From NCBI RefSeq assembly GCF_032191835.1, contig NC_083237.1, positions 24,180,001-24,244,000 on the forward strand: a stretch of 64,000 nucleotides of DNA, given 5' to 3'. The notes beneath the pieces are model-generated. The model was not told the origin of the DNA, searched no databases, and worked only from the letters and a program-made list of their open reading frames with translations. Source of the stretch: Heteronotia binoei. Its lineage: Eukaryota. Numbering within the stretch: the first letter of the stretch is position 1; each line of letters begins with the position of its first letter. A program made the position numbers and the translations under genes. Below, in pieces: positions 9,360-64,000 of this stretch.

Positions 9360-9545
9360 ATCTTCTTCGTGGTCTCTGTGCAGTCCCACACATGGGTCTT
9401 GCCGCAGGCAACGGATCCATACCTCGGAGCTCCAATAGCTCGTTTATAACGTCTTTTGGCGCGCTTTCCTCCCGCCCTGGGGAGCAGGCAGCGACTGCGC
9501 ATGCCTGGAGCGGGGGGAGAGCGCCCATTCCACTCAGTTTCTTCC
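9360..9545 (+). repeat. DIRS left inverted terminal repeat
   Basis: Reverse complement of 15551 to about 15739; near-identical apart from the outermost 35 nt or so. Confidence 0.95.
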
Positions 9546-9778
9546 CTTCCGCCGCCCGGACAACACCTACCTCGTTGCGTTCCTCCTCTGGCTCGTCTCT
9601 TGGTATCGTACTATCTCTCTTACTTCTCCTTTTCTATTTTCTTCGTCCCTTTAATATATATATATATAAAAAAAAAAAAAAGGTAGATCCCGACTTCTGC
9701 GCTTTTGCCTTTTTTTTCCTTTCTACCCCCCCCCCCCAACCCCGTCTCTCCCTTCCCTCCTTCCCCTGTCCGGAACGG

Positions 9779-14267: not shown

Positions 14268-15265
14268 CCCACGTTATTCTTAATGCCAGGAAGCCCTCCA
14301 CAAGGCTTTCGTACCGAAGGAAGTGGAAACGCTTCTCCTCGTTCGCGGCTACTAACCATCTACTTCCTGAATCGGTACCTCTCAATATGATCCTGGACTA
14401 TTTGCTTTCACTGAAGAAATCAGGACTCTGTTACTCATCCCTCAAGGTTCATCTGTCCGCCATCTCCGCGTTCCACAATCCGGTAGACGGCAAGACAGTT
14501 TTTTCTCATCCCTTGTCCAAGTCCTTTCTCAAGGGCATGTTGCACCTCAATCCCCCTGTTAAACCTCTTGTTCCAACTTGGAGTTTATCCCTAGTTCTTT
14601 CCTCGCTTATGAAGGCACCATTCGAACCCATGGCCACCATAGACCTCAACCTTCTTTCCTGGAAGACAGCGTTGCTCGTTGCCCTCACCTCTGGTAAGCG
14701 GGCAAGTGACCTATGCGCTTTCCGCCACGATCCTCCTTACACCATTTTCCACAAGGAAAAGGTTGTCCTGAGACCGGACCCTGCGTTCCTTCCTAAAGTT
14801 GTCTCCCAGTTCCACTTGTCGACTGCAACCTCTCTGCCGACCTTTTTTCCCAACCCAACTGACCAGGGACAACGGGCCTTGCATTCTTTGGACGCAAGAA
14901 GAGCATTATCCTTCTACCTCCATCGTACACGGCCTTTTCGTAAGGACCCTAATTTATTTGTGGCATACGGAAACCCTTGCAGGGGACACAAGATCTCTAC
15001 CCAGAGACTTTCAAAATGGGTAGTGAGTGCTATTAGGCTGTGCTACGAACTGGCTAAGCAGCCTCTGCCCGAAGGCCTTAAGGCGCACTCCACTAGAGCG
15101 GTCTCGACGTCTTCGGCCTTCTTGCACGGCGTCTCCATGGAGGACATCTGTGCAGCCGCATCCTGGTCCTCTCCCTCCACGTTCGTCTCCCATTACGCGT
15201 TGGACGTTCGTGCGAGACGTGACGCCTCCTTCGGACAAGCGGTCCTCAGATCCATCTTTCACTGA
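12440..15265 (+). CDS. DIRS ORF3: tyrosine recombinase, overlapping ORF2 (frame open from 12398; true start unknown)
   Basis: Catalytic set R (GKRASDL), HSTR, W (ASWSS) and Y (VSHY) all present; integrase N-terminal helix STRLSYRRKWKRF. Confidence 0.95.
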   Translation: MEFHHHRLLGPYHRAFRLRNRVRFATTPPPLHSHPSICTPPAGNPGLAPEECHRTRSSSTPRDGILLKILPGPQTGWREAPYPRSSEAEQIHRIQEVQNDLPTGHPASYPQGFLDGFPRSSGRLLPCDNSTSAPEVPAIRCGERPLPVRLPALRPLHCAKGIHQVHGGGGSGSQTSKHHSFPVYRRLAPHSTKPASVAGQHQHNTLSSRFLRASGECIQIPSRAHPRHQVYRGSPPHFSPPCLPPRGSSTYYHHLSQVDSASALPVGIHHTTLAGPHGCHDFRHPLCQATDATTTALVCKSLPSSVATAECPTYGPPESTFIPNVVDDTQQPPRGHAIFTGTPSGCCDNGRLKVGMGSPLRGQNRQRPLDPFREGHAHKLLRTDCRAQGPLILSPTDQREPCPNFNGQHGNGVLYQQAGRNQVAPALPYSRLTLGMVPGAQHLPDRDSPPRCRQCSGRLSEQVSSGRPRMVPQSDLPSTHFQVLRNTQGGCFCFQGQCQVSTLLFQEAERRLPTQMDRSSPLYLPTNPSTNSGVDEDNTRRHGLHPGSPLVATATMVHETSPVISSHLPSSPVRDRPPLPSQRSDIAPQPSGSGPYGMENSTSHLSAEVAHVILNARKPSTRLSYRRKWKRFSSFAATNHLLPESVPLNMILDYLLSLKKSGLCYSSLKVHLSAISAFHNPVDGKTVFSHPLSKSFLKGMLHLNPPVKPLVPTWSLSLVLSSLMKAPFEPMATIDLNLLSWKTALLVALTSGKRASDLCAFRHDPPYTIFHKEKVVLRPDPAFLPKVVSQFHLSTATSLPTFFPNPTDQGQRALHSLDARRALSFYLHRTRPFRKDPNLFVAYGNPCRGHKISTQRLSKWVVSAIRLCYELAKQPLPEGLKAHSTRAVSTSSAFLHGVSMEDICAAASWSSPSTFVSHYALDVRARRDASFGQAVLRSIFH

Positions 15266-15380
15266 AATGGAGGTGAGTGCATCCGCTTATACTCCTATAC
15301 CACACAGTCTTTGGTATGGGTCAGGTGACTAACTTTTTCTTTTCCAGCACCCTCCTCCAGGACTCTTAGCTGGCTAGTCA

Positions 15381-15476
15381 CCCATGTGTGGGACTGCACA
15401 GAGACCACGAAGAAGATAAACAGGTTGCTTACCTGTAACTGATGATCTTCGAGTGGTCATCTGTGCAGTCACACAC
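15381..15476 (+). repeat. DIRS internal complementary region (ICR)
   Basis: 15381-15420 is complementary to the left terminus and 15421-15476 to the extreme right terminus (15705-15760); the junction reads GATAAA|CAGG. Confidence 0.95.
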
Positions 15477-15550
15477 GCCCACCCAGCCTTCCCCGCTGCT
15501 GGCCTCTGGTACTTCTTGCTTTAACCTTTCTAGTCTTGCCAGTGGCGGCT

Positions 15551-15760
15551 GGAAGAAACTGAGTGGAATGGGCGCTCTCCCCCCGCTCCAGGCATGCGCA
15601 GTCGCTGCCTGCTCCCCAGGGCGGGAGGAAAGCGCGCCAAAAGACGTTATAAACGAGCTATTGGAGCTCCGAGGTATGGATCCGTTGCCTGCGGCAAGAC
15701 CCATGTGTGTGACTGCACAGATGACCACTCGAAGATCATCAGTTACAGGTAAGCAACCTG
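15551..15760 (+). repeat. DIRS right inverted terminal repeat including the right extension
   Basis: Reverse complement of the left ITR plus extension ending GTAAGCAACCTG. Confidence 0.95.
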
Positions 15761-17649
15761 TTTTTTCAGTGTTTCACATTATCAGATCGTTTCCCATCAA
15801 AGCCAGTAATGCGTCAATAAAAATATAATCTCAGGACAAAGTGTGTAATTTCAGCAGTTTTTGGTTAGCCTGCATTCCATTGACTGGCTTGTTGCCTATA
15901 CTGGAGGGAACGGTTCTTGCTGTCTCGGTTTGGCCCCAAACTGTAATCTAATGCACAACCTATTCTTTCTCTTCTCCCACCCCTTTGCAGCCCAAGGAAT
16001 TTTGTTGATAGCTCAGCCTATAGCAGAAATGAACACTTACTGGCCAAAATGGTTTTGGGAATCCCACCAATGAGGTCAGCCCCCCCCCTCCAAAAAAAAC
16101 CCCCTTGACTTGGGAGGGGTCTATTTGCTAAAAGATGGCTGTGTTCTGCAAGTTATCCAAGTGGTCTCTCATTTTTTTAGACAATATAACTTCTTTCTGA
16201 CACACTAATTCAGGAGCAAGACTTGCAAGATGCATTGATTTTAAAATGAATATTCCTGAAAGCTTTTCCGCCATACAAAACAAGGCAACAAAACAGATTC
16301 CGCTGATGCATAAATACTGCAGCAAGGAGGAAACTGCAACAGGTAGTCTCTGAGCTGGTTAAGGCTCACTTCTCAAATCCCTCTAAGGATTCTTCTCATG
16401 CATCTCTCTCAAAAGGATTCAGATTCAACAAACTGGACAGTGCACTAACCTGACTACAGGCTGCATCTTGATATACATAGCCTTTATAAAGGCAGTAAGA
16501 GCCCAGAAAATCCTTCCAAGCTCCCCAGCAACTAGCCTCTTACTCTGCTGCTAAGCTCCATGTGTTGACACTCCCCATACTTGTTTACACTAACTCATTT
16601 TTGAAATTACACTGTCAAATACAGATCTTTAATGCTAAGTTTATCTGTGTTTTCCTAACAGAAAAAATGGTATTGACAAAGGGAGGGGGGATCAATTTGC
16701 GATGTTCTTTCTAATTTTGTTCCCTACTGAGTGGAGTAGTTCACATTCTGAGCAGAATATAACTGCTGTAATCTTAAAATGGGCAATGGGCTGTGTTAAT
16801 GTGGGTCCACTCACATCTTAGAGGGCACAATGGATGCAAGTAATGATCAGTCTCAGGCCTCTCTGTTCTCAAAACCACCCTGTATGATTCCATTGGCTGT
16901 CTGGTTTAGTTGAGCTGGGGTGGGTGGGTGTTCTCTGCAATGATTTAAACTAGCAGGCAAGCTTTCAGCAATATACAGTATTCTTTCTCACAAAAGTGGA
17001 GGGAGTAGTCTAGTCGCCGCCCTGCTGTGATTTGTGTGTGAGAAGGATTTGTTCAAGAACCTGGGGAAACACTTTAACTATGTCATCCTGCATCTGTTAA
17101 ATAACGAGAGATTCCAGTGTGGACTAGATTATATTCTTGGATGATTTTGTGTTTAGTTACCAACACACCATTTCAAACCTGTAAAATCAGTCATATCCTA
17201 CACGAGTACCTTTTATACCCAATACCAGTGTCCGTTATTTCTAGCAATAGCATGATACTGTTGCCTGTGACCTATGCAGAATTTTATACTCTACAGAGGA
17301 ATGTGTAGATTTTCATCATGTAAACATCTAGTGTGACACAGTGGAGCAGGCAGTCCCTTTCAGAAGACAGCGTTCTTTTTTCATTCCAGACGGTCACCTC
17401 TTCCCTCTAGGTATCCCTTTTTAGGCAACCCGAGAGAATGCAGACCTTGATTTTTGTTTCCATTCTAAAGTGCATCAGCGCAATCAGGGTGCTTGATTCC
17501 ATCTAGAGCTACCACTCGAGCCCACACACTTGGGTGAAACCTACCACCAAATGAACATAGATAGGATCGGTCCGTCTTTGCACTAAATTGTGACCTCCTT
17601 CCCGAGTTAATTAAAAGTCAGGGGTCGAGTGAAGTGAACATCTAACCAT

Positions 17650-43398: not shown

Positions 43399-43580
43399 CA
43401 GGGTTTTTTTTTTGTAGCAGGAACTCCTTTGCATATTAGGCCACACCCCCTGATGTAGCCAATCCTCCAAGAGCTTACAGTAGGCCCTATAAGAAGAACC
43501 CTGTAAGCTCTTGGAGAATTGGCTACGTCAGGGGTGTGTGGCCTAATTTTCAAATGATTCCTGCTACAAAAAAAGCCCTG
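43399..43580. mobile_element. Palindromic hAT MITE (called MITE-A here)
   Basis: Nearly the whole element is an inverted repeat (CAGGG...CCCTG); 8-bp TSD AAAATTAC. Confidence 0.9.
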
Positions 43581-46279
43581 AAAATTACACATGGACCAGG
43601 AAAAGAGTATAAAGGGGGTATTTTCTCCCTCCTCCTTATTACTTCAATTTGGGGCCACCCAATGAAGGTGACCAGCAATATGTACAGGTTGGAGCAAAGG
43701 GAATACTTATTTACGCAATTACATTCACTGCCGGTACCTCCTCTGGAGTAAACAGACAAGGACATTCTCCTCTTGTGTCTTAGCTACTGGGTAGAGCGGT
43801 TTGTCTTCCTAAGGAGTACCTTTTGCTTCTGAAAAGTGCCAGACTCCTGTCACCAAAGAAACAGAGGCATCAGCAACCAAATGTGGTGGGTCTGTAACTA
43901 CCAAATTTAATGTGTTTCAAGGCAAGCTGAGATTGGGCAGAGCAGGCGTGTGTGATTCCAAGAGAAGGAACAGAAGCCCTCCCCCCCCGCCCCCGCCACC
44001 CCTCCAATGGAGGTTAGACCAAGGGGCTGGCTCTGTGCCCCAGTGAATCGGCATTTGCCAAAGCATTTTCTCTGATCAAAAAACAGGTTTTCGAAATCAA
44101 CCATGGTAGTTTGAACCTGAAAGTCTGCAGATTATGCTCACCCCTATTTTTTGGTCTTTATAACCCAAAATCTTTAACCCCCACCCCACCCCAATGTGTG
44201 CTATTTTACCATCCCGCGTTATTGCAGAACTTTTTTGTTTGCAGGACTGAATCGTATACCTACAATGGTTTTGCAAGGGAGGTTTTTTAATAGGTCCTAC
44301 ATGGATAGAATCTACCCTTGTAGCCTTTAACAGCATTGATACATCTAGAATGCAGATTTTTTCAGATTATGAGGGATTACTATATTAATCCTTTGTTCAA
44401 CCAGTCGTCCCCTGGAAACCCTGGCTCTTTTGCTCAGTGATAACGATCGTAAAATTCCTCTAGCAATCGTGAAATTTGTCTCAGTCCTTTTAGCCCTTGC
44501 ATTAAAACAAAATAAGAAATAAATGTCTTCTGCTGCTGAGATTCTTGAATCAATGAGCATCTAAGGGTACAAAAGGGAAAAGGAAGGAGAGTGGGTATTT
44601 GAGACTAATTGCTTTACAGCCCAATCCAGACATATGTGGCGGGTGGCCACTCGGGTGTGGGTGGATCTATGGCGCCGCTCGTTGGCTTCCAAAGGGAAGA
44701 CGGTACGCCATGCTGGGAGAGGGAAGAGGGGCCTGACGAGCAAGAGAGAACCCGTCGCCATGGTGATTCCACCTAGGCGCACACTATTGGACCGCTGCTG
44801 AGGCGGGGGTGGGGGAGGCACAGGTTCAGGCGGGACCATGGGATTGGCCAGCCCATTGCACATGACCGGGCGAAGGGGCGGAAAGCCCGCATCTGAGAGG
44901 CAGTCAATCCCCCCACTCTCTCCTGTTGTCAGAGACTCTGCCAATGGCAGGCTGGCGACCAGGGGTATGTGCGGACAAGCAGGAAGTGCCAAGTGCAGGA
45001 GTTCCCTGTCCTAGACAGCGGCTGGAATGTGTGTCTGGGAGCGGCCAGACCAAGTCCAGAAGACACCACCACCACCACCCGGAGCCCCCCCTCCTGATGT
45101 TGCCCTGCTGCCGCCCCCTGCTATGTGCAAGGAACACCTCCCTTGGGGGCCGTAGAACTCAAAGTGCGAGCCGCTGGGCATGCATCCATTTCAGCAACCC
45201 CCCCGCAAGTGCCCAGCGCACAGCAGTCCTGTGCGGTCGAGTAGGCCGTCAGCCCGATCAGGCTGAGGGGCGGGCACTCCCCCTCCCCTGTCCAGCCATG
45301 CAGGGGGCAGCGTGGCAGCTCATAGCCCATTCCCCGCCCCCAAGAACCAAGTCTGCCCACCCTCCCAAGCACTCCCTTGGAGAGGCCACAGACAGAGGGG
45401 GGGTTGCCCTGGGAATGTGCAGCATATGCCAAGCAGGAGAGACAACAGAGGGCACAACTCAGACTTTATTTTTCTGGAACAGAGTGCAGCAATTTCCCTG
45501 GTGTGTGCTGGGCAGTCTCGCTGTGGGCAGGGCTCCGCTCTGAGCAGCAGGCAGAAGCAGCTGAGGGAGTTGTGGGGTGGTGGAGCGGCACATGAAGAAG
45601 CCTCTGTGTTGGAGTCCCACCTGCAAAATGGAGACAGATCAAGAGCACCTGCAGGCGCGGCGGCTGGAAGCGCAGGCTGCGTTTCAGTTGGGCACTCTCT
45701 TAAAGCGACAGTCTCTGACCCACCTTCCTGCAATGGGGCAGCTGCCACACACACATGCCCCATGCCCCGCCAGGGGTTGGGAACGCGGCAGAGGACAGAC
45801 CAGGGGAAGGGAGCAGGTGGCAGCACAGGGGAGCGAGGTCAGCAGATGCCCCCTGCCGGAGCCCACTGCCTAGTTCAAATGCCAGAGACGCTCGCACACT
45901 GAGCAGTCGAACTTATCCAGTTCCAGACAGTGGAACTTATCCAGCCATGGGTGACAGTTCTCGCATGTAGAGCCTCCGGGAGCCCGGAACCTGTGGAGAC
46001 CTGGAAACAAGAGCAGTTAGCCCCAGGGGAGAGACCTCTCTGCTGGGGAGGGGGCTCATCAGCCCGAGTTGCAAGGGGATTTGCGAGGCAATCACGCCAC
46101 TCCCTAACAGGTTTCCAAGCTTTCGCAGTGGCGGAGCCGACCTTTGTTTTTGGTGCCCTATGGGGCACACCGCCGTTTTTGCGGAGGTAAAGTTGCACCT
46201 CTCGGGGGGGGGGGGCATGTCATGGGCCAAACTGCTCAGGAATCTGCCTAAGCCTGGCCACGCCCCCAACTCCACCCCC

Positions 46280-46418: not shown

Positions 46419-46806
46419 GTAAGTCGGCGCAAACCTTTCCTGCGCCCAAGTAGCGGCTCGTCTGCTCCCAAAAGACTCCCCCCCCCCTCTGGATTGCACT
46501 ATTAACTGCCTTGGATCTCCTCTCGTGCTTGCCCTGTTTAGATATAAACAAATGCATTTTAGTTGCTGACTTTGCCAGTTCACAAGCTTCCTTGTTAAAA
46601 AAAATATGCAATGTATTATTAGGAAACTTGGATCTGATCAATTGGTTCTTCTCCTCCTGGGAAATCAGAATCATTTTTTAGATTGCTATGGCACAAACTG
46701 GTTTCCATCTGCCCTCCAGGTAGAGCTGTTTCAGAGGGAATCAGCCCTGAATGAGGACTTTTTTTTTCTTCCTTTTCAGAGTTTATTGTGTCGTCTCCTC
46801 ACAAAA

Positions 46807-46938
46807 ATGTCTGCCTGCCGGCTTGGAAAAGTGATCCCCAAGACAAGCATCCTGTTCTTGTGTGACATGCAGGAGAAATTCCGACCAAACATCAGCTACT
46901 TCCCTCAGATTGTATCTGTCGCGGCTCGAATGTTGAAG
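46807..46938 (+). CDS. ISOC2: Isochorismatase domain-containing 2, first coding exon (exon begins 46780)
   Basis: [44 protein letters not shown]; aag|gtataa donor, phase 0. Confidence 0.95.
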
Positions 46939-47279
46939 GTATAAGACACGCAGGGGGGCTGTGCTTTTGGGAATAGGGCGGAGGGCAGATCCAGAATACT
47001 GGAGGGAAGAGAGTCTGTTACGACATTCACAGGAATTATTAGTTAATTAAAATTGAATCAGGGGTATTTTGTGTCTCAGTGTTCCCTCTAAACTGAGTTA
47101 GTGTGAGGTAGTTCACAGTTTTTTAGCCTCCAGCTCTTATAGCTCAGGAAAAATGGCCCCAGAGCAAACTAATTTATGCAGTAGCTCACAACTTTAATGC
47201 CAGTAGCTCATGAAGTAGAATTTTTGCACACAAGACTCCACAGCTTAGAGGGAACATCCTGGCAATTGTGTAGAGGTGC

Positions 47280-48870
47280 AGAGCCAATTGCCTGACTACT
47301 CTGGTTAAGTAGAACAAACTGAAACTGAACCCTGACAAAGCAGAGGTAATTCTGGTTTGGAAAATGGAAGTCTTGAAGGATATTGTGCTTCCCACTTTCA
47401 GTGGGATTCAGTGACGGTTGAAAGCCATGAGCTTATACTGGACCCAGGGTTACTGCTGGAGAACCACTGCAAAAAAAAAAAAAGCTTTCTTCAAACTTAG
47501 TTAAGCCACCTAGATCCATGCCACAGTAATACCAAGACTAGACTACTGTAATGCATGCCACATAGGTCTCCCCTTGAAGTCAACTCAGAGGTTGGTGCAG
47601 AATGTTACAGCTTGGTTATTATCAGAAGCTAAAGCATGCAAGTTACACCTGTTCTGGAGTCACTCCATTGGCTGCCCATCAGTTCACTTCAAGGTTTTAG
47701 CCATCATCTATGAAGTCCTTTGTGGTCTTGGACTGTCGTATCTGCAGGACCACCTCTCTTCCTATGCTTTGCCGTGACAACTTTGCTCATCTGAGCTGGA
47801 CCTTCTGCAGGTACCACCCTGTAAATTGTCAGAATCAGGGCTTTTTTTTGTAGCAGGAACTCTTTTGCATATTAGGCCACACCCCTCTTATGTAGCCAAT
47901 CCTACCAAGAGTTTACAGGGCTCTTCTTACAGGGCCTACTGTAAGCTCTTGGAGGATTAGCTACATCAGGGGTATGTGGCCTAATATGCAAAGGAGTTCC
48001 TGCTACAAAAAAAGCCCTGGGCAAGATCAGCCATCAACTGAACATGTGGATTATCTGTTGGGGCCCCCACCCTGTGGAATGACCTGCCTAAGGAGGTCAG
48101 GATGGCTTCCACACTTTAGGCATTCTGTAAACAACATAAAACAGAAATGTTCAGGAGAACATGTTTGTAAATGTGGTCGGGCTATGTTAGAATGGTTCAG
48201 GAGATGTTTCAAAGAAGGCAACAGGTCTATGGACTTTACCTCTGTGTATGATATGTGTTATCTGTTGCTGCATACATTATCTTGTTCTTAGGGCACTGTA
48301 TTTCTGTTTACGTAATGCCATTTACTGCTTCATTACCTGTCATGTCATATAGTTATTTATATATTACCCTGTTTTTGTCCCCAGGGGGACCCACAATCTC
48401 TTATAACATTCTTCCCTCCTTCCCGTCTCACCCAGACCTGGCCATAGTAATCCATGCAACTGTCACCTCCAGATTAGACTGCTGTAACTCACTCTACGAA
48501 GGGCTACTCTTGAGACTGACCCATAAACTCCAACTGGTCCACAATGCGGCAGTGCCAGGTCCTTACCAGGACCCTACAAATGGCATGCATTCGACAAGTG
48601 CTGGACAAGCTGCACTGGCTTTCAACCGAGTACTGGATCTGGTTCAAAGTGGTGATAACCTTTAAGGCCTTAAATGGTCTAGGACCAACATACATTTGGG
48701 ACTGCCTCTCCTGGTGTAAAGAAGAACTTGCTGGTGGTCCCTGGCCCAAGAGACAGGGCTTTAGTTGCCCTGGTGGAACTCTCTGCCGAGTTAACACCTG
48801 TGCCCTGTGGGAGCTAGTGCAATTCTACAGAACCTGCAAGGCAGAGATGTTCTACCAGGCATTTGGTTGA
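47280..48870 (+). mobile_element. Two decayed L2 LINE 3' fragments
   Basis: KLNPDK..., (S/P)RLD(Y/C)CN..., HKLQLVHNAA, LHWL..RI.FK remnants. Boundaries approximate. Confidence 0.7.
47836..48020. mobile_element. Palindromic hAT MITE-A, second intact copy, inserted in L2
   Basis: Same palindrome as 43399-43580; decayed TSD (5/8 match). Confidence 0.85.
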
Positions 48871-50299
48871 GGACAGCGATGGTTTCCATCAGTCTGGTGC
48901 TCCTATCTTTCTGCCTCCCACCCACAGGGCAGTGGCTCCATCAGTGACCTTAACTTCATCTTGTTAGGTGTTGTGTTTTGTTGGATTTTACTATTTTTAT
49001 TGTTAATTTATGTATGCATATTTGTATTACTGTGTGCCGCCTTGAGCCTTGTTTCCCAGGGAAGGGTGGTCTAAAAATTGAACCTAATAAATAAAGTAAA
49101 CAATAACCCTGTGAAGTAGGTCAGGCTGAGAGCATGTGACTGGCCCAAAGTTGCCCAGCAAGCATCCAGGTTAGAGTGTGGATTCAAACCTGGGTCTTCC
49201 AAATCGTAGTCTGACAGCAGGCTGGGTCTCAGTCAGAACACTTTGTTCTGATTTCTGCCATCCCATCCTGATTACATCTCTTATTCGATGTCTCATCCTT
49301 TATATTGCATTGACCTCTGTGTAATTCACCTCAGTTCTCAGGGAGAAAAGTGGGCTATAAATAAAGTTGATTACTATAATATTAAAATCATCTTCCAATG
49401 TATTGGGGGGTTTATTTGGCATGGATGCTGTCCAACAGGTGCCTATAGTAAGTGGAGTCTTGTGAGCAAAAATTCTACTTTGTGAGCTACTGGCATTAAA
49501 GTTGTGAGCTACTGCATAAACTAGTTTGCTCCGGGGCTATCCCTCCTGTGCTAAGAAAAATGTGTGAACTGGAGGCTAAAAAACTGTAAGCTAGCTCATG
49601 CTAACTCAGAGGGAACATTGCTTACAATTGTTGCATCAGAATCTATACACATCTGTAAGAATCATATTATTTTCCGTGCTGGAAGGCAGTCTGGGTGCCT
49701 AGCAGATGCTTTTACCATTTGCTACAAAAACTGGCAAAATGATTTGACAAGAGAAGGGTTAGAACTGAAGAAAAATGACATTGGTACTGGAGAAAGTTGA
49801 AAGCTATCGATAGCCCTGACCTCTGTGAATTTGTCTACTCCCCTTTTAAAGCCTTATACGTTGGCAGCTGTGACCATACCCTGTGGCGGTGAGTTCCACA
49901 GTTTAACTGTGCACTCTGTGAAGAAACACTTCCTTTTTTCTGTCCTGAATCTCCCACCTGTCAGCTCTCCCCACACCAGGCATAACTTTATGGACTTCTA
50001 TCATGTCTCCCTTTCTCGTCTTTTTTCTAAGCTTAATTGCCCAAAGCATTTTAGTAGGCCTCTTAGGGCAGCCACTCTAGCCCTCTGATCATTTTGGAGT
50101 ACCTTGTGGGCCGGCCTCAACTGCTGTAGCAGGACTCCTTTGCATATTAGGCCACACACCCCTGATGTAACCAATCCTCCAAGAGCCTACTGTAAGCTCA
50201 GGGGGTAGGCTTTCCAACCCCCCCGCCCTGGTGGGGGACCCCTGAATTTGCAGCCTTCTCCCCTGCTCTCCAAAAATCTGGAAGCGGGGGGGGACGGTG

Positions 50300-50907
50300 C
50301 TTCCCCCTCACAGCGCCCTGCTGCCACAGCAACACCAGCACCGCCACCACCAGCGCCGCCGGCCCAGGCACAGGCACAGGCAGCAGCCGCCATTTCTACA
50401 GGCTGCCTGAGAAGAGCAGCAGAGGGTCTCCTCTCCCTCCGTCCCACCAGGCCCCAGTCACTCTGCAATTCATCCTCCAGTATGAACTACAGACTCCAGC
50501 ATTCTGCGTGACTTTAAGGCACGCCGGTCTATCTTGCGCTGTCGTAATCCACTTCGGACCACACACCCCAGCCTTCCTTGTGCCAACCCACCCTTATCCC
50601 CTGCCTAGATGCATTCTGGGACTCGTAGTTCTGCGCTTCCCGACGAAGTTTCTCTCTTCTGTCGCCCATGAGGGAGGAAAAGTTTCCACACTCCTGTCAC
50701 TTGCCGGGCCAGGCAGTTGCTAAGGGCAACCACGCGCCGACCAATAGCAAAGGCGCTCTCCAGAGCGGAAGGCGCGAAGAGCAGCGCGACGGGCCAATGG
50801 CACGCTTGGCAGGGGCCTTAAGGGCGGAGCGCGAGTCTCCTTGAGCCTCGTGCTGCTTTGCAGCGTAGTCGGGTGCTGCAGGTGACCGACCGACTGACCT
50901 CGGGGCG
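50300..50907. promoter_or_regulatory. CpG-island bidirectional-type promoter inside ISOC2 intron 2
   Basis: ZNF143-type motifs 50484-50504 and 50611-50631 (GAACTACGAGTCCCAGAATGC on -), RFX X-box GTTGCTAAGGGCAAC 50716-50730, CCAAT at 50741 and 50794, YY1-like GCCGCCATTT at about 50386. Confidence 0.8.
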
Positions 50908-50991
50908 ATGGGAGGCGGCAGTAGCGCTTCGCGGAGAGTCACCTTTGAGGCGGACGAGAACGACAACGTGACGGTGGTGAAGGGTGTGCGG
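50908..50991 (+). CDS. CHCHD3: CHCHD3/MIC19-like first coding exon; downstream exons not found in the window
   Basis: MGGGSSASRRVTFEADENDNVTVVKGVR against recalled human MGGTTSTRRVTFEADENENITVVKGIR; cgg|gtgagc donor at the matching phase-0 position. Whether it is the orthologue, a paralogue or a copy is unresolved. Confidence 0.8.
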
Positions 50992-51033
50992 GTGAGCAGT
51001 GGGGAGGCTCCCCTTCAGCACCTCCTGTCCCCT

Positions 51034-51515
51034 TTGGGTTGCCAGTCCCCAGGTGGGGGCAGGGGATCCCCCGGTTTGGACCCCCCCCCCCGCTTCAGGG
51101 TCATCAGAAAGTGGGGGGGGGGAGGGAAAGGTCTGCTGGCCACTCATTATTCCCTATGGAGACTGATTCCCATAGGGTATAATGGAGAAGGATCTGTGGG
51201 TGTCTGGGGCTCTGGAGGGCTGTTTTTTGAGGTAGAGGCACCACATTTGCAGCATAGCATCCGATGGCTCTCCCCAAAATACCCTCCAGGTTTCAAAAGG
51301 ATTGGACCGGTGGGTCTAATTCTAGGAGCCCCCAAAGAAGGTGTCCCTATCCTTCATTATTTCCAATGGAAGGAAGGCACTTAAAATGATGTACGGTCCC
51401 TTTAAATGTGATGGCTAGAACTCCCTTTGTAGTTCAATCATGTTTGTCACACCCTTGCTTCTGACTCCACCCCCAAAGTCCCCAGATATTTCTTGAATTG
51501 GACTTGGCAACCCTA
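51034..51515. mobile_element. hAT MITE, TAGGGTTGCCA family (called MITE-B here)
   Basis: TIRs TTGGGTTGCCA / TGGCAACCCTA; homologous in reverse to 60110-60525; no TSD of its own (TGTCCCCT vs TCCAGGAG). Confidence 0.8.
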
Positions 51516-51872
51516 TCCAGGAGGATTGGCTACATCAGGGGTGTGTGGCCATTGTGTCTCTGACTGTGGATATGGGTAAGGGAAGGAATCCTGTGCTACC
51601 ATCAGCTCTTTGGAGATGGGATCAGAATGGAAGATAGACAGGTATATCGCTTGCTAGTTCTAGAAAGCTGCTTGTCTCTAACTGTGTCCCCAAGACCTAC
51701 AAGTCTTAGCCGTCCCATAGCAGCACCACAGCTGGGCACAGGGGGGCAGTATAATATCGATTTCTGAAAATAACACATGCTTCCTGCTATCTATGAAGCC
51801 TGCTTCCCACTCTCCGAAAGTCAAGAATCCTGCTTCCTCTCAGACAAGTCTCGCTCTCTCCTCCTCTTGCAG

Positions 51873-52085
51873 GTCGCCAAAGCTCTTGAAATCCCAACGG
51901 TGGTGACTGAACAATACCCCAAAGGTCTAGGCCCAACAGTGCCGGAGCTGGGTGCAGAAGGACTTCGGAAATACTCCAAGACGTGTTTCAGCATGCTCAT
52001 CCCTGAGGTGGAGAAAGAGATGGCGGCTGTCCCCAGCCTGAAGTCTGTGCTGCTGTGTGGCATTGAGACACAGGCCTGCATCATG
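51873..52085 (+). CDS. ISOC2: ISOC2 second coding exon
   Basis: [26 protein letters not shown]...KTCFSM...[13 protein letters not shown]; canonical AG/GT, phase 0/0. Confidence 0.96.
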
Positions 52086-52307
52086 GTAGGGGCCGAGAGG
52101 CCTGCCACTGGGACTGGGGGGGTGGGGTACAAGGCCTGAGGCCAGGGAAGATGGGCCCATGGCTTTGCCTGGTGAGTCAGCTGCAGAGAAGCCCCACAGC
52201 TCTGGCCCTTTATTGAGTGTCCCCATTCCCCACCCCCCAAGCCAGTAGGAGGCCTTAATGGGCACCCTGGGCTTGATCAATATTTCCACATTCTTGAAAA
52301 CCTAGAA

Positions 52308-52589
52308 CAAGGGTGGCTAAGCTTGTTTAACGTAAGAGCCACATAGAATGATTGTCAGATGTCTGGGAGCCACAAGGAAGGCAGTCAGGCAAATAGATGG
52401 GGAGAGAGGTGGAAAGAAAGCAACTTTAACTTTAAAAGCATTTTCCAAACCGCCAGCTGGCTTGGCTTGGAGAACTGGTTTAAAGAGAGAAATGCCTTCT
52501 CCAAGACAGGGCAGTGGGGGCTTTGAGAGCCACACAATATGTGTAAAAGAGCCACCTGTGGCTCCCAAACTGCAGTTTGGCCACCCCTG
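52308..52589. mobile_element. hAT MITE
   Basis: TIR CAAGGGTGGCTAA / TTGGCCACCCCTG; perfect 8-bp TSD ACCTAGAA. Confidence 0.9.
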
Positions 52590-52912
52590 ACCTAGAAAAT
52601 AAGGCACTTTCAATTTTACTTCTTCTTGTTGTCCCCTCAGACTGGAAAGGAGGAAGGAAGCCACAGTAATTGCATTCACCCCTGGGCCTTAAGATGTGGG
52701 AAATGTCTCGCTCTGGGCGCCACCAAATGCACAGAAGTCAGGAGGGGGTGAGTGGCCATAAAGGCCCCTTGTGAGTGGAAAGAGAGAGAGAGACCTGGCT
52801 TGTCTGGGCAGCCGCTACTCCTGCCAGAGGGTGGATCACAGCAGGAGCAAAGTCAGGGTCCCGCTCCTTTCTTCTTTGGGCACAACACAACCCTTCCTTT
52901 CTCTGCACACAG

Positions 52913-52983
52913 AGCACAGCGCTGGATGTGATGGAACGAGGACTGGATGTTCATGTTGTGGTGGACGCCTGCTCCTCTCGCAG
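52913..52983 (+). CDS. ISOC2: ISOC2 third coding exon
   Basis: STALDVMERGLDVHVVVDACSSR(S); 71 nt, phase 0/2. Confidence 0.95.
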
Positions 52984-53098
52984 GTAACTAGTGGGGCAGA
53001 AAGGGTTCAGTGTCTGGGGCTGCAGGAGTGCTGCCTTTCTTCCTTCTTTCTGTCCATCAATGTTGTCTTTCATTTCCCTCTCTGCCTCCTTATTGCAG

Positions 53099-53216
53099 CC
53101 AGGTGGACAGGCTTGTGGCCTTGTCTCGGTTACGTCAGAGCGGGGCTTTCCTTACGACCAGCGAAGGCCTTATCCTGCAGCTTGTCAGAGATTCGGCACA
53201 CCCCTGTTTCCGAGAG
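53099..53216 (+). CDS. ISOC2: ISOC2 fourth coding exon
   Basis: [39 protein letters not shown]; 118 nt, phase 2/0. Confidence 0.95.
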
Positions 53217-53653
53217 GTAATTCTCTGGTCTGCCTTGGAGACCTGGGTCTGCCCCCCAAACCCTCCGAATTTTCTATAACATGTAGCAAAGTCTGGCAGC
53301 CTCATACATACAGACTTCTGCAAGCATTTTTCCCAAGATAACCGGGGGGGGGGGGGGGGGTTGAGCAGGGATGCAGTTCTGGCTGGCTTTGCATCAGGGG
53401 TGTGGCCTAATAGTCAAATTAGTTCCTGCCAGGCTTTTTTTACAAAAAAAGCCCTGAGGATAACATTCCTTTGTGTCATGGGAGCATCTGGGTTGCTTTT
53501 CATTGCTGTGGGTTGAGGACAAGGGAAAGAGCCCACAGTGTAAAATCGGAGTATTTTTACTTTCTTTTTACTTTAATCCTAGCAAGCTTACAAATTGGGG
53601 GCCTGTTAACACACTGGAACTTCTCACTTCTCAGGTGAGATTTCCTCAATGAT

Positions 53654-55463
53654 TTTGAGTTCCCCGAGTATGAAGAAACACCTGCCTTGTCAGTGGAGGG
53701 CCTGTTTTGGGATTTTATGATTGGCACACTCCACCCACTTATTATTAGATATTGTATTAGATAAAGCGATGTGCTGGGAGGTTGTGAGGAATTACGGGGG
53801 AGAGAGGTCCCCTCCTCTGGGATTCTGTAAGATCTCAGGGCTTGAGCAGGGCAACTTCCCCATCTCCTCCCTCCAATAAATAACAATTTGGACGAGGAGA
53901 ATAAATGATTGAGGAAATCTCACCTGATCCCAAACCTCCAGGACACTATAAAGTTTTTAAAGGCTTGAGCAAACTAATTACCTCATCCCACTCCCCCCCT
54001 TTCGTTTGACTAACCCCTCAATTTGTTATGCCCCCCAGAGGGGGGTGAGCATACTCTCTTCTCATGGTACTGGAAGTTTGGGGGAAGAGGGAGAATTTTT
54101 CTTACTGACAAAGTAACGTTTTTGTGTACAGGTAGGGAGTTCCCTGCCCCATGGGCAGAAACTTCTGTGTTGTCATTACGGGGCTCTGTTTCACCCCACC
54201 AATTGCATTCAACCACCAACTATGAGAGCCAGTTTGGTGTAGTGGTTAAGTGCGTGGATGGACTTTTATCTGGGAGCACCGGGTTTGATTCCCCACTCCT
54301 CCACTTGTACGTGCTGGAATGTCCTTGGGTCAGCCATAGCTCTGGCAGAGGTTGTCCTTGAAAAGGCAGCTTTTGGAAGAGCTCTCTCAGCCCCACCCAC
54401 CTCAACAGGATGTCTGTTGTGGGGGAGGAAGATAAAGGAGATTGTGAGTCACTCTGTGATTCGGAGTGGAGGATGGGATATATATCCAATATCATCATCT
54501 TCTTCTTTGCTACTAGAGAGAACACTTTGGGGTCACTATCTGTGAAGGATCACAGGGAGGAGAAATAACTGGGGAAATTGCTCCCTGCTAGCCTTACGGA
54601 TACTAACGTTTACAGCTTCATCCCCCCTGCTGCCATTCAGGGATGCCAATCTCCAGGTGGGGCCTGACAATCTCACACTAAGTTTGGTGTAGTGGCTAAG
54701 TGTGCGGACTCTTATCTAGGAGAACCGGGTTTGATTCCTCACTCCTCCACTTGCTGCTGCTGGAATGGCCTTGGGTTAGCCATAGTTCTGGTAAAGGTTG
54801 TCCTTGAAAGAGCAGCTGCTGTGAGAGCTCTCTCAGCCCCACCCACTTCACGGGGTGTCTGTTGTGGGGGAAGAAGATAAAGGAGATTGTAAGCCACTTT
54901 GAATCTCTAATTCAGAGAGAAGGGCGGGGTATAAATCTGCAGTCTTCTTCACTATTCCAGCAGACTTCTCAATAACAGATATCAGTTCCTCTGGAGAAAA
55001 GGGCTACTTTGGAGGGTAGGCTCTGTGGCTTTATTCTCCACTGAAGACCCTCCCCAATTCCTGCCGTCCTCAGGCTCCACCCCCAAAATCTCCGGGAATT
55101 CCCCAACTGAAAGCTAGTAGCCCTTCCAAATGTTCAGCCTTCATCCGTGTTCCATGTTGGCTTGTTACCTAGTCCAGGGAGGGGATGGGGGTACAGTCAT
55201 ACTGTTCTGCACATCTTTGAGTTCCCCGAGTATGAAGAAACACCTGCCTTGTCAGTGGAGGGCCTGTTTTGGGATTTTATGATTGGCACACTCCACCCAC
55301 TTATTATTAGATATTGTATTAGATAAAGCGATGTGCTGGGAGGTTGTGAGGAATTACGGGGGAGAGAGACAGGGTTTGGAAACGGGTCCCCTCCTCCGGG
55401 ATTCCGTAAGATCTCAGGGCTTGAGCAGAGCAACTTCCCCATCTCCTCCCTCCAATAAATAAC
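53654..55463 (+). repeat. Near-identical direct repeat pair, 53654-53884 and 55216-55463
   Basis: About 230 bp shared; the second copy has an extra segment of about 16 bp (ACAGGGTTTGGAAACG). Confidence 0.9.
54224..54950 (+). mobile_element. Two tandem tRNA-derived SINEs with L2-like tails (54224-54509 and 54681-54950)
   Basis: TTTGGTGTAGTGG A box, GGGTTTGATTCC B box, CTT-repeat tails; the two copies align along their length. Confidence 0.8.
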
Positions 55464-56559
55464 TCTCAACCAGGGCTGGATTAACAAATAGGCCAGATAG
55501 GCACCGGCCTAAGGGCCCTCACGCCTTTAGGGGTCCTGGGCTTGCTTTCCCTCCTGCCCTGGTTTTCCCTGGTTGTTGTTGTTTGTTTTGTGTAATAAAA
55601 CTGGTTTATTAAAATTGTTGGTTGGTAAAATTAAAAACGTATTAGGAGATAATTTGCGAGGGGCTCCCAAGATTTCAACTGCCTAGGGGCCTCCAAAGGG
55701 TTTAATCTGGCACTGCTCTCAACTGGTTATATCCCTGCTCGTTTCTCACCAGCATTTGCTTGTGGGGTGGGGGCAACAAAAGTTATGTTTTTTCTGCACG
55801 TTTAGGGAATCTCTCCACTGTGTAAAAAGGCCTATGTCTCTGTGGTAGGCCTGTCCTCCCCTCCTCTTGTGCTTGGCATGTGGATCAGCTGCTTTACTGT
55901 TAAATGCGGCAATAAAATAATGAAACTGAGGGCGGGCACTTCTCGTGATGGACTGAATTCTCTCACAAACTTGCAGTGACCCGAGAAGGACTCACAGTGG
56001 TAATTAGTGGGATTTGGCAGAAACATCCAGGCTTTTTGTACACAGAAGGTAAAGATTGCAGATAACAGCTGGGAAGGCCTGTCTGCTCTGCTCTAGGGAG
56101 AGCTATGGCTGAACTTGCAAGTGTTCCTCTGGGCTCCTAGGGTTTGTTAACATCTGCGAGGAGTGATTCGGAAGCTGAAGGGGGTTCTGAAAAATGCACA
56201 CACACACACACACACCCCCCGCAAGATCAGGCATTCCTGACACCTCCCCTTTAGTACATGAACAAGTTGATCGAGTTTTGCAAGTAATTAGTGAAACAAT
56301 TTTTAATTGTCTGCTTAATCTGGAAACAAATGTGTGTGTGTGGGTGGGGGGGACCCATCTTGCTTCTTGTTAAAGTAGGCAATTGCAAACCCCTGGGCAG
56401 CAGATGCTTTCTTAGAAGAGGCACCCTTCTGATCTCCGCACACAAACAAATTCTTCTTCCGTAGAGGTGCCTGCTATGGTAAATGTGGGTATCATCTGAA
56501 AACAAAGAAAATAAGCTTTCCCCCTCAGATGTACTACTTTTTGTGTGCAAGTCTATGCA

Positions 56560-56895
56560 GATGAAATGGGTGGTTTTTAAACAGAGGCTAAATCGCCATC
56601 TGATAGTAATGCTGATTCTGTGAACTTAGGCAGATCATGAGAAGGAGGGCAGGAAGGGTTGCATCCGTGCTTAGTTCTCGTGGCTCTTTCTTACATACCC
56701 AGGGAAATGCTGTTTGCCACTTTGAGGTCAGGCAGCAATTTTTCTCCAGGCCGGTTCTTGTTATTGTTGTTTGCCATCTTCTGGGCTTGGAGCAGGGGTC
56801 ACTGGGGTATGTGTAGTGGTGAGGTACTTGTGAGCTTCCTGCATTGTGCAGGGGGCTGGACTAGATGACCCTGGAGATCTGTTCCAACTATGATT
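56560..56895 (+). mobile_element. CR1 3' UTR fragment
   Basis: Ends GGGCTGGACTAGATGACCCTGGAGATCTGTTCCAACTATGATT, a typical CR1 terminus. Confidence 0.7.
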
Positions 56896-57317
56896 GTTTA
56901 ATCCATGGAAAGTATTTAGAGTCAGTTACAGATCCCTGAGCCTAAGGTGGGGGAAGACAGAATTTGAGGCTAAAGGAAGAGGTGAACGGGAGCAAATGGA
57001 GTTTCAGACATTCTGACATTCCAATGAACCTCTCCAGTAGTGCATGGCAAATTCAGGAACAACAGATACTTCAGATCATGTAAATACCTGCCAGCTATTT
57101 AAGCTCACTTCTGGAAAAATTGCAGCTGATGCCCAGGGAGCTCAGAGTAGCATGTGCATTTTTCCAACCCCCTTTTATCCTCATCATAACAACCCTGTAA
57201 GGTAGATCATGTTAAGAGAGCAACTGGCTGAAGTTCATCCAGTCACGGCAAAGTGAGGATCTGAACCTGGGCCTCACCCTGGTGTGATAACTTGTGCCGT
57301 CTCTCTCTCTTTTTCAG

Positions 57318-57395
57318 ATCCAGAAACTGATTATGGACCCTGTCCCAGACAGTGGCCTCCTTCCCTTCCTGACAGCACCAAGCCCCCAGTTTTGA
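57318..57395 (+). CDS. ISOC2: ISOC2 last coding exon
   Basis: IQKLIMDPVPDSGLLPFLTAPSPQF*; ttttcag acceptor; completes a 203-aa protein. Confidence 0.93.
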   Translation: MQKLIMDPVPDSGLLPFLTAPSPQF

Positions 57396-58580: not shown

Positions 58581-61500
58581 TCTGGTGTAATTTAGTACAC
58601 CTTCCGGTGATGTCAGGGGAGGGTGGGATATAAATTTGATAAAATAAATGTCAGGGGTGCATGGCATATGCAAGTGAATTGTGCTAATGAGCTCCAGCAC
58701 CTCTTTTTCTACTAAATGACCCCTGCTTGTTTACATTTTGTGTTCACTTGGGTAGTGCTATGGTTGGATGCTCAGGAATTAGAATCCTTTTCCCACACAC
58801 ATTTGGTTACAGATTTAGGAAAAGAGCATTGAAAGGTTGGTGGTTAGAAGGAAAGAAGGCGTGTGAGTTGCTGAGAAGAAGGAACTGAGCATGGCAAAGG
58901 AACAACAGGGACCTGGCCAGAGGTCCTCCACTGTGACCTGTAAAAGCTTCCACCTAATACTCTTTACTGAATTCCTAACTAGACTCACAGCCATGAGGGT
59001 TAGCAATTTGGTTTTGGGGGAGAGCAAGGAACTGGTGTTGCATAGCAGCTGAGAGGACACGTTGTGGCCCAGAGGGTATAAATCTTGCCCCTGCCACAAG
59101 CACTTTAGGGTTTTAGGAAAGCCATTCTCTCTTGGTCTCATCCTGCCCCCATCTCTAGCAAGATGGTACTGGGTTATCTCACAGGCTTGTTGTGAGAGCT
59201 ATGGTATGTTGTCTTATGTGAACCACTTGGAACACAAAGTGAATTCAGACAAATGTTACATATTATTAAGTCCTCAGGATTCCAGAACATCAGCCAGTTT
59301 CTGCACTGATGTTCTTCCTGTTCCACACTGTGTGGCCTAAAGGCACGTGAGTGTGCTGCGGCAGACCCACACTGCAGGGACACGAAGGCCAGAGGCTCTC
59401 CCTCTTTGTTTAATTCTTTCATTTGTACCACACTCTTCTCCCTCGTGGGATGCAGAGCAGCTTAAAGCATTCTCCCCTTCTCCATTCCCACACAACAGCC
59501 CGGCGAGGCAAGTTAGACTGCAAGCTTCAAGGCAGTCCAGGGAATCAAACATGGTTTCTCAAATCTGAGTCTGGCCAGACTGTGGCTCAGGAACCACATG
59601 TGGCTCTTTGGCACATGTTGTGTGGCTCTTGAAGCCCCCCCTGCCCTATTGGCAGGCAGCTTGGAGAAGGCATTTAAAGTTAAAGTTGCTTTCTTTCTTC
59701 CTCATCTATTTCCTTCCTTCCAACTGTCAAACATCTGATGCTCATGTCTTATAGCTCTCAAACATCTGACATTTATTAAGATTGGCCACCCCTGCTCTAA
59801 CCATTATACAATGTTGTTGTTGCCCCTTTCCCTCAGCAATTTCATTAGGGTTGCTAAGTCCAACTCAAGAAATATCTGGGGACTTTAGAGCCAGGAGCAT
59901 GGTTGTGATCAAGACCTTTTTGGCAGAAAAATCCCAGCAGGAATTCATTTGCATATTAGGCCACACCCCCTGACACCACCATTGTTTGATGCAGGGCTTT
60001 TTATAGAAAATCCCAGCAGGAACTCATTTGCATGTTAGGCCACACTCTCTGAGATCAAGCCAGCCAGAACTGTGTTCCTCTGCATTCCTTCTCAAAAAAA
60101 AAAAAGCCCTGGCTGTGATAAGCATGACTGAATGCTGAAGTGAGTTCTGGCCATTCCATTTGAAGAGACCATGTTCCTTTTAAATGCCTTCCCTCCATTG
60201 GAAGTAATGGAGAATGGGGGCACCTTCTTTGGGGCCTCATAGAATTGGATCTCCTGGTCTAATTATTTTAAAACTTGGGGAGTTTTCTGAGAGGCACCAG
60301 ATGCTATACTGAAAATTTGGTGCCTCTACCTCAAAAAACAGGCCCTCCTGAGACTACCAATTGATCGATTTTCCATTATACCCCATGGGGATTGGTCCAT
60401 AGGGTATAATGGATCGTCCAGCAGCTGTTCCTACCCCCACCCCACGTTTTGATAGCCCTGAAGTGGGGGAGGGCCTCCAAACCAGGAGATCCCCTGCCCC
60501 CAACTGGGGATTGGCAACCCTAATTTCATTCAAGAGGTATACTGCCTTTGAACATGCTCAGATGCTATTCCTAAGAAACACAGATGGACTGAGCCTCTTT
60601 TTAAAAACGATTTAAGCCTGCACCCCTCACCACAGCCCAGGAGTTCCATAAGGTTAATTGCATAAGTCATTTCTTTTTTTCTCACCTGGCCAATAGTCTG
60701 CAAGTGAACCCCTTCATCTGTTAGTTTCTGTTATGCAGCCATTAAAGATGGGAGAGCAGACCAGGCCCTTTTGTGTTTTCATCCTTCTCCCATCTCCCTG
60801 GTCCTTTGGGATTGCTAGACCTAAATTCTCAGGGGGGGGGTTGTGAACTATTTTAAGAGCTGTATGGAATAAGGACAATTGCAGAGTATGCAGCTTTTCC
60901 CACTGCAGCACGGAGATGGGGGGAAATCTGCCCTTGGCAGAAGAATCCCTTCCCACGTGGTGCGCAAGAGACAGCTCTGCACCCAGTAGCCCCAGTCTGA
61001 GGACAGATTTGGAAAAAGAATGTACTTCTTTCAATTCTGCATTATTCTAGGAGAGGCTTAGTACAGTACAATGGTTAGAATCCAGACCAGGGCTGTGGAG
61101 ACCTGAATTCAAATCCTTACTCTGTCGTGAGGCTTACTGGGTGACCTTGGACCAGCCCTTTGCCTTAACTAGCTCCCAAGGATTATTGTAAGGAGAGGAG
61201 AACACCCCCTCACCACCTTGTGTCACCCTGATGGCCTGACAAAAGTGGCAGCTATCTTTTTGGGCTTCAGGTGAGCGTTCCCTTTCTAGCCCTGTGACCA
61301 CATACATTAGGCTCAGTAAGAGCCTGCATTGGTTCTGAACATTTTACTGTTAAGAGTAGTACTATGTGGGATCAGGCTGAAGGCTGTATCCGAAAGAGCC
61401 ATATAATGGAAAGGAAAGGAGTAGCACAGGAATCATTTCTGGCAAAGAGAGCGTAGCTGCTCCGTTATGTTGCTGAAATGAATATGCCCCTTTCTTGTAG

Positions 61501-63006: not shown

Positions 63007-63169
63007 ATGGCCCGCCCTGCGGCCCAGGCTAGCCCCACACCGAGCCCCATGCTCGCCTCTCCTCCTCTGGGTCTGGCCGGCCCCAGCTCCACCATGGTCA
63101 GTCTCAAGAGCCTTCTGCAGGGACCGGTCAAGAGTCCCGAACGGCGGGGGCCGAAGGACCTGAGTGCAT
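63007..63169 (+). CDS. DBP: PAR-bZIP factor DBP, first coding exon; gene continues beyond the window
   Basis: MARPAAQ...VSLKSLLQGPVK...DLSA(C) against recalled human MARPVSD...LGLRSLLQGTSKPKEPASC; t|gtgagt phase-1 donor; E-box context. Confidence 0.82.
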
Positions 63170-64000
63170 GTGAGTGACAGCTCATCTCTCCCCCCCTCCA
63201 ATATCCCTCCCCCTCATCCACCTGCCTGGTTCCCAACTTCCTTTCCTGCCCTTCTCTCCCTCCCCATAGGGGTCTGTCTGCTCGGCTCGATCCTACCATA
63301 AGCCCCCCTTCCCCCCAACGCTGGTGCGTTTTCCTTTCCAAAGCACTTTAGCTGGGGGGTTCGTTGCATTTTGCCCTTGAAACAACAAGGTTGCCTTTAG
63401 TCTCGTTTCAGAGTGAAATGCCCAAGGCTGCGCGTATGTGCTTGGCAGATGCGGAATTCGACTCCATCTGTCTCCTGTGGTTTGGATGAGATGGGTGCTT
63501 GCCCGTTCTTTACCCCTTTCTATCCATGCTCTCCCCCTCCCCCGTCTTATTTCATGAATCCTGCCGTGTCTTCTGTATGGGACAGGATGCTGGACGAGAT
63601 GGACCACGGGTCGCCTAATCGAGCAGAGGCTCTTCTTATGTCCCTCACCGTGTCCCATAAAGTGTGCTTGTCGCTCTTTGCGTGATATCCACCCCTTACC
63701 CACCTTCCCATGCATGCCAGCCTGTGCTACATAACTAGAGGGTTACATACGATCGTTGAAATTCATATCCGTCCATCAGAAATTCACTCACTCCCTTCTG
63801 GGAAGGGGGGGGGGGGGCTAAACAAACCCGCCTTCTGTGGGTTGCAAAGGCCTGCTCTTGGCATCATGAAACCGCAGCCCTAAACTGTCGCTGACACCCA
63901 GCGTATTTAAGCCGCCCTCCCCACCTATCCAGATGGCCTTCGGATCCTGAACTCGCTGTAACCTCTGCCTGTTCCGTGGGGGAGGGGGGCGGAAAAGGGA

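Follow-up and report, generated by a model that had tools for sequence, protein, structure and literature searches.

The first coding exon of CHCHD3/MIC19 has a stray copy in an intron of the ISOC2 gene of the gecko Heteronotia binoei, where it lies in a 1.42-kb insertion together with a CHCHD3-type promoter and pieces of transposons. We regard it as likely that this copy is a young, DNA-level, transposon-associated duplicate of a CHCHD3/MIC19 fragment, and that it is probably silent. The window (the whole stretch of DNA that was analysed, 64,000 nucleotides) supplies the position numbers used throughout; in the genome, the stray exon is found at about CM063339.1:24,230,908-24,230,991 (68.09 Mb; H. 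binoei assembly GCA_032191835.1), and the ISOC2 locus of CM063339.1 (L001) is 100% identical to window positions 36807-64000. The stray exon and ISOC2 occupy the same strand, with the exon located between ISOC2 coding exons 1 and 2:

46807 to 46938, plus strand: ISOC2 coding exon 1, 44 amino acids including LFLCDMQ, preceded by an acceptor at 46780
50908 to 50991, plus strand: orphan CHCHD3/MIC19 coding exon 1, 28 amino acids with the Gly2/Ser6 myristoylation motif, 27/28 identical to H. binoei MIC19 (P0130)
51873 to 52085, plus strand: ISOC2 coding exon 2 (phase 0), the proposed acceptor exon for the stray exon
52913 to 52983, plus strand: ISOC2 coding exon 3
53099 to 53216, plus strand: ISOC2 coding exon 4
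57318 to 57395, plus strand: last ISOC2 coding exon, including the stop

Translated together, the five ISOC2 coding exons reproduce the annotated H. binoei ISOC2 protein (P0010) without a difference. This host protein matches PF00857 over residues 14-161 (E=1e-26), and its best solved relative is 2b34 (E=3.6e-58). The acceptor at 46780 implies a non-coding ISOC2 exon further upstream. The coding range of the gene extends over 10.6 kb in Heteronotia (46807-57395) versus approximately 4 kb in Paroedura (L002:3001-6974) and Eublepharis (L003:3001-7067), and the greater length in Heteronotia appears to come from transposon insertions in the introns.

The stray exon was recognized through its close similarity to MIC19. 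An ATG at 50908 on the plus strand opens an exon of 84 nt, which ends at 50991, is followed by GTGAGC and translates to MGGGSSASRRVTFEADENDNVTVVKGVR. The ATG, Gly2, Ser6 and GTGAGC donor that the first-pass annotation had described are all present at 50908-50991, as is the VTFEADEN stretch it had called conserved, and the exon as a whole agrees with H. binoei MIC19 in 27 of the 28 residues, the sole change being Gly5 to Ser. Alignment with nine sauropsid MIC19 N-termini leaves 21 of the 28 columns invariant; the RRVTFEADEN stretch and the Met-Gly2...Ser/Thr6 myristoylation motif are both kept. A protein search with the frame starting at the ATG (first 40 residues scored; 12 candidates) returned exclusively MIC19/CHCHD3 of lizards, snakes and crocodilians. 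The match spans the whole length of the exon and ends at a conserved exon-intron boundary, an agreement that, judged by the sequence, is far beyond chance. As it ends exactly at the boundary between exon 1 and intron 1, the copy is genomic (unprocessed) and not a retrocopy.

The coding content of the copy is limited to the N-terminus of the protein. In P0130, the Pfam family MIC19_MIC25 (PF05300) begins at residue 30, which belongs to exon 2, and the CHCH domain is C-terminal; therefore, the stray exon encodes only the lipidation head of MIC19. A Pfam search with the 28-aa exon yielded no match because the family model starts at exon 2. Human MIC19 is N-myristoylated at Gly2 in cells, and this modification is needed for binding to the membrane and to SAMM50 (PMC6235283). 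Both residues of the motif needed for N-myristoylation of MIC19, Gly2 and Ser6, are retained in the copied head (PMC6235283). A separate observation concerns the crocodilian MIC19 isoforms P0003, P0004 and P0006, which carry an extra VSSR after ..VVKGVR: it looks as if an alternative donor, 12 nt inside intron 1, had been used (GTGAGCAG.., giving Val-Ser-Ser). At the same position the stray gecko copy reads VSSG, with no GT donor there.

The canonical gene resides elsewhere in the genome. Annotated H. binoei MIC19 (isoforms X1 and X2; P0130 and P0001) is encoded on another contig of the same assembly, 133.44 Mb long, over a gene range of 476 kb. Its exon 1 (XP_060101996.1 = P0130) and those of its orthologues share with the stray exon the ATG, Gly2/Ser6, the RRVTFEADENDNVTVVKGVR stretch, the exon end and the GT donor. 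The stray exon differs from them in lying on another chromosome, away from the CHCHD3 locus, in being followed by no further MIC19 exons, and in having Ser5 in place of Gly5. Since canonical CHCHD3 is on a different chromosome, the stray exon is an extra, orphan copy, as had been claimed from the first inspection of this DNA. MIC19 and ISOC2 are on separate contigs in Paroedura picta and Elgaria as well. The copy encodes none of the functional domains of MIC19, and the real CHCHD3 is intact at its own locus. The parts of the insertion that carries the exon are arranged as follows:

about 50125 to 51546, plus strand: the whole 1.42-kb insertion in the ISOC2 intron, containing MITE arms, promoter, exon and element B
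50125 to 50199, plus strand: left arm of an hAT-type palindromic MITE (CAGGGCTTTTTT..), from which the outer ~13 nt are missing; identity to the complete copies aligned at 43413-43568 and 47849-48007 is 88-92%
50200 to 50331, plus strand: G/C-rich, CpG-poor, transposon-like stretch, forming a weak 34-nt inverted repeat with 51084-51117
about 50332 to 50907, plus strand: copied CHCHD3-type promoter and 5'UTR, with a CpG island, two CCAAT boxes and two ZNF143/Staf-like motifs
50992 to 51032, plus strand: start of copied CHCHD3 intron 1 with its GTGAGC donor (exon end CGG, then GTGAGCAGT); the unique sequence stops where element B begins
51033 to 51515, plus strand: second repeated element, B, with the ends GGGTTGCCA.. 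and ..TGGCAACCC, 77% identical to 60111-60523 on the minus strand
51516 to 51546, plus strand: right arm (inner part) of the same hAT-type MITE, without its outer ~38 nt, as aligned to complete copies

Comparison with other geckos shows the insertion to be young. In Paroedura picta (L002) and Eublepharis macularius (L003), the orthologous ISOC2 intron aligns to the window up to approximately 50124 and again from approximately 51547, and the ancestral flanks (..AACTGCTGT and ..TCTCTGA..) are contiguous in both species. Therefore, 50125-51546 is an insertion in the Heteronotia lineage. A tblastn search with the 28-aa exon against the ISOC2 loci of these two species found no match. The copy has about 3 fixed differences from the expressed canonical sequence in ~100 nt, compared with 74-84% identity of the surrounding intron between Heteronotia and other gecko genera, which makes the copy much younger than the genera. 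The same difference bears on the possibility that a CHCHD3 piece was wrongly joined into the ISOC2 intron by the assembler. Multi-copy repeats adjoin the insert at both ends, and repeats of this kind can mislead assemblers. However, a divergence of ~3% from the expressed canonical sequence, including an amino-acid change, is not that of the same DNA placed twice; the insert is also short, is contained without a break in a chromosome-scale record, and the ancestral sequence is intact on either side of it. We consider such an artefact very improbable.

The boundaries of the insertion are equally informative about an alternative raised by the first-pass annotation, namely that a whole CHCHD3 paralogue would be interleaved with ISOC2 and have its later exons beyond the window. 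The stray exon does keep its donor, and the first intron of canonical CHCHD3 is very long (gene ranges of 236-476 kb). Nevertheless, the CHCHD3-derived sequence includes only 41 bp of intron 1 before it stops at a transposon (element B), and the whole insert measures 1.42 kb with orthologous ISOC2 intron on both sides. Downstream, ISOC2 is followed by a 311-aa bZIP gene, just as in Paroedura; the 64-kb window yielded no further CHCHD3-like exon motif, nor does it hold the downstream exons encoding PF05300 and CHCH that belong to a CHCHD3/MIC19 gene; and the protein collection contains one MIC19 gene product cluster for H. binoei. An interleaved paralogue is thus rejected as hardly credible. 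A real CHCHD3 exon 1 with ISOC2 nested in the first intron was considered too, and is ruled out by the location of CHCHD3 on another chromosome and by the 1.42-kb insertion. As for the neighbouring gene, the start of its 311-aa, bZIP_2-domain product is found at 63007-64000 (plus strand), just downstream of ISOC2, and it has the same position in Paroedura picta.

The preferred reading, a transposon-associated duplicate, draws on the anatomy of the insert. A 31-nt inverted repeat, 97% complementary, connects its two ends (50150-50180 and 51520-51550). Complete copies of the MITE are present in the window at about 43399-43581 and 47836-48020: these are palindromic, about 160-180 bp long and have CAGGG..TTTTTGTAGCAGG termini. 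The copy at 43.4 kb combines its CAGGG.. termini with a perfect 8-bp target-site duplication (AAAATTAC), a combination that is the signature of hAT elements. Read depth and base composition separate the components of the insert. The left part (50125-50331) has a CpG o/e of 0.22, with high multi-copy read depth in the bin 50133-50331, and over element B the read depth is very high, as for a multi-copy sequence, and loose ends occur at 51515. The CpG-island piece (about 50332-51032) is single-copy, and read depth over the promoter piece is low and single-copy-like. The MITE family is, as a side observation, extremely abundant in transcripts, among both RNA contigs and reads.

A host fragment thus lies between inverted arms of an hAT-family element, the arrangement of Pack-type transposons. 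The complete terminal inverted repeats and the 8-bp target-site duplication of such an element are missing at the insertion: its flanks (..CTGCTGT and ATTGTGTC..) are not duplicated, and the ancestral sequence on either side is almost untouched despite the truncated MITE ends. The composite occurs once in the 64-kb window. Clean hAT transposition at the ISOC2 intron site is ruled out by the truncated termini and the lack of a target-site duplication, and a Helitron origin by the ends of the insert. We propose that approximately 0.7 kb of the 5' end of CHCHD3/MIC19 (promoter, 5'UTR, exon 1 and 41 bp of intron 1) would have been copied in the Heteronotia lineage, and would have come to sit between two hAT-type MITE arms together with a second transposon. 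As both MITE termini are missing and no target-site duplication is present, the most likely route of the 1.42-kb composite into the intron is the copying or capture of a fragment while a double-strand break was being repaired. Its source would probably be a Pack-type hAT element, or another donor locus, with the CHCHD3 5' end already inside.

Other mobile elements and a part of another gene were noted elsewhere in the window. A DIRS-like retroelement at 9344-15330 (plus strand) has open frames of 1017, 699 and 955 aa, and encodes a reverse transcriptase and RNase H, along with a Dam-like methyltransferase stretch and a domain of the integrase SAM-like (tyrosine recombinase) type. At the start of the window (3-612, plus strand), a second DIRS-like copy is represented by recombinase-like frames, and repeated terminal sequences flank both copies (761-1070, 9242-9650 and 15432-15825). 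The intact frames suggest recent activity. An open frame at 1688-2014 (plus strand) corresponds to the extreme C-terminal myosin tail (Pfam Myosin_tail_1 positions 1024-1081, E=2.6e-25), and probably represents one of the late exons in a gene for a non-muscle myosin heavy chain that precedes ISOC2.

The duplicated fragment brought regulatory sequence with it. In 50600-50907 the GC content is 0.62 and the CpG o/e 0.9; CCAAT boxes are located at 50741-50745 and 50794-50798. Matches to a ZNF143/Staf-like pattern occur at 50486-50504 (plus strand) and 50611-50629 (minus strand); these are the only two in the 64 kb, where 0.23 are expected by chance, and they serve as a lead only. A transcript contig of the canonical gene aligns from 50890. 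From these elements, the copied promoter looks complete, and with the exon, ATG and donor intact the sequence itself presents no obstacle to transcription. On its opposite strand, the promoter piece contains an Ala/Gly-rich open frame of 99 aa (MAAAACACAWAGG..., 50190-50486, minus strand), which may have arisen by chance in DNA so rich in G+C, or may be a relic of divergent transcription at the CHCHD3 promoter.

The position of the copy relative to ISOC2 gives it the capacity for a fusion. The 44 ISOC2 residues that were said to be replaced, LFLCDMQ among them, are indeed encoded upstream at 46807-46938, which places the stray exon inside a 4.9-kb ISOC2 intron. The acceptor before 51873 consists of a strong pyrimidine tract and CAG, and the only other acceptor-like site between the donor and 51873 is a weaker one at 51097-51098. 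If transcribed, the donor at 50991 would most likely be joined to the ISOC2 exon at 51873. Joining 50908-50991 to the four downstream ISOC2 exons in silico produces 564 nt and 187 aa (28+159) with a single terminal stop, and so reproduces the phase-0 open fusion that had been claimed.

The fusion protein would lose part of the host fold, as the isochorismatase domain begins within the 44 replaced residues. In an AlphaFold2 model of ISOC2 (mean pLDDT 78), strand beta1 comprises residues 14-20, followed by a short helix at 23-28 and a further helix at 32-48, most of which also falls within the 44 residues. The strand ends in the nearly invariant Asp20, and its equivalent belongs to the catalytic triad in the isochorismatase-like fold family. 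The 187-aa fusion would lack beta1, Asp20 and most of helix alpha1. Because beta1 is missing, even a transcribed chimera would probably be non-functional and is unlikely to fold; on the model, a folded isochorismatase-like enzyme is an unlikely outcome for the 187-aa product.

We searched RNA data for transcription of the copy. Reads of the RNA-seq runs X7 and X8 (~6% of each, tissue unspecified) and the contig sets X1 and X10 were aligned to 46750-52700, where most of the aligned reads derive from transposons. The individuals may represent another lineage of the H. binoei complex, possibly one without the insertion. Three fixed differences distinguish the copy (T at 50895, A at 50920, T at 50922) from the transcripts. 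All X8 reads over the exon have G at 50920 and C at 50922 (10/10) and C at 50895 (7/7); accordingly, the letters of the copy were found in 0/10 X8 reads at 50920 and 50922 and in 0/7 at 50895, with ISOC2 itself at a depth of 1-3x. In X7 (~6% of the run), no reads cover the diagnostic bases of the exon. The letters read at 50920 and 50922 turn codon 5 from AGT (Ser) into GGC (Gly), the residue of annotated canonical MIC19. Contig record 8 of X1 (1249 nt, depth 39) has a length that fits a MIC19 mRNA. It aligns to 50890-50991 only, ending exactly at the donor, and its other 1147 nt align nowhere on 46750-52700, a region that includes the ISOC2 exon 51873-52085. The canonical letters and the contig ending at the donor together indicate that the exon reads come from the canonical gene on the other chromosome; the assignment rests on the protein (Gly5) and on the behaviour of the contig. 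Were the two promoters equally active, the probability of observing 0/10 copy reads would be ~0.001. In the RNA examined, the stray copy is probably silent or, failing that, several-fold less active than canonical CHCHD3.

Among the splice joints listed, neither 50991->51873 nor the normal 46938->51873 occurs, the depth of the ISOC2 exons (1-3x) being too low for even the latter to appear. Separate negative evidence comes from proteins. Searches of the protein collection with the MIC19 head and with ISOC2 exon 2 revealed no MGGG-ISOC2 or other combined protein. A single ISOC2 protein is annotated for H. binoei; where other species have shorter ISOC2 isoforms, these either vary at the 3' end or begin with an unrelated N-terminus. 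At two of the three fixed differences (50895 and 50920), the transcripts have CpG where the copy has TpG/CpA, a pattern that fits a methylated silent copy, although the sample is tiny at three differences.

These observations weigh against a newborn chimeric gene, in which an active copied promoter would provide ISOC2 with an alternative first exon, and thereby a myristoylated 187-aa protein, at a low level or in unsampled tissues. The frame is open, both splice sites are strong, the promoter motifs and the CpG island are preserved, and the copy retains the Gly2/Ser6 motif, with myristoylation of MIC19 Gly2 having been shown in human cells (PMC6235283). Set against this potential are the absence of the copy's letters from all 10 reads, an assembled transcript that is not joined to ISOC2 exon 2, the lack of such an isoform in the annotation or the protein collection, a product without beta1, Asp20 and most of alpha1, an insertion that is not conserved, and the CpG to TpG/CpA changes on the copy's side at two of three positions in that tiny sample. 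We consider the newborn chimera unlikely. Somewhat less likely still is the fuller version of the idea, whereby an hAT-derived Pack-type element would have mobilised the CpG-island promoter and exon 1, which would now act as a second ISOC2 promoter and give rise to a lineage-specific, MIC19-headed myristoylated variant. The myristoylated chimeric ISOC2 of the first-pass annotation is therefore left unsupported by the canonical letters in 10/10 reads, the contig that does not align to ISOC2 exon 2 and the want of any such protein. The silent copy, which the same annotation had listed as an alternative, fits best: no reads carry the letters of the copy, at thin coverage (ISOC2 ~1-3x).

A transcribed newborn chimera, if true, would be a chimeric gene caught at birth. 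A myristoylated ISOC2 matters only if transcripts exist, and a new function is doubtful even then, because the core strand of the enzyme fold is missing from the product, as is the conserved Asp. As a silent duplicate, the locus represents a clean, datable case in which a promoter and first exon entered another gene on the matching strand and in frame; events of this kind supply exon shuffling with its raw material.

Host gene pieces captured between DNA transposon arms are well known in plants and, to our knowledge, rarely documented in vertebrates. Pack-type transduplication is represented by the plant Pack-MULEs and by rare animal reports such as Turmoil-1 of C. elegans (PMC2572040). The gecko locus shares with these elements a host gene fragment enclosed by inverted arms that belong to a non-autonomous DNA transposon (an hAT-type MITE in the gecko), but differs in that both terminal inverted repeats are truncated and no target-site duplication is present, so that transposition of the composite is only putative. 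Helitrons of vespertilionid bats have captured promoters and first exons (PMC4224331). Here too a host promoter and first exon were moved into another gene with the potential for chimeric transcripts; by contrast, the ends of the gecko insert are not 5'-TC and CTRR-3', and its flanking repeats are inverted MITE arms. Finally, the locus resembles ordinary partial duplicates and unprocessed pseudogene fragments in vertebrate introns, being young, lineage-specific and unannotated, with no expression detected and an intact parent gene. Unlike these ordinary fragments, it comes with a CpG-island promoter that looks full, its ORF start is intact and its donor is in phase with the next exon of the host, and it thereby holds more potential than most of them.
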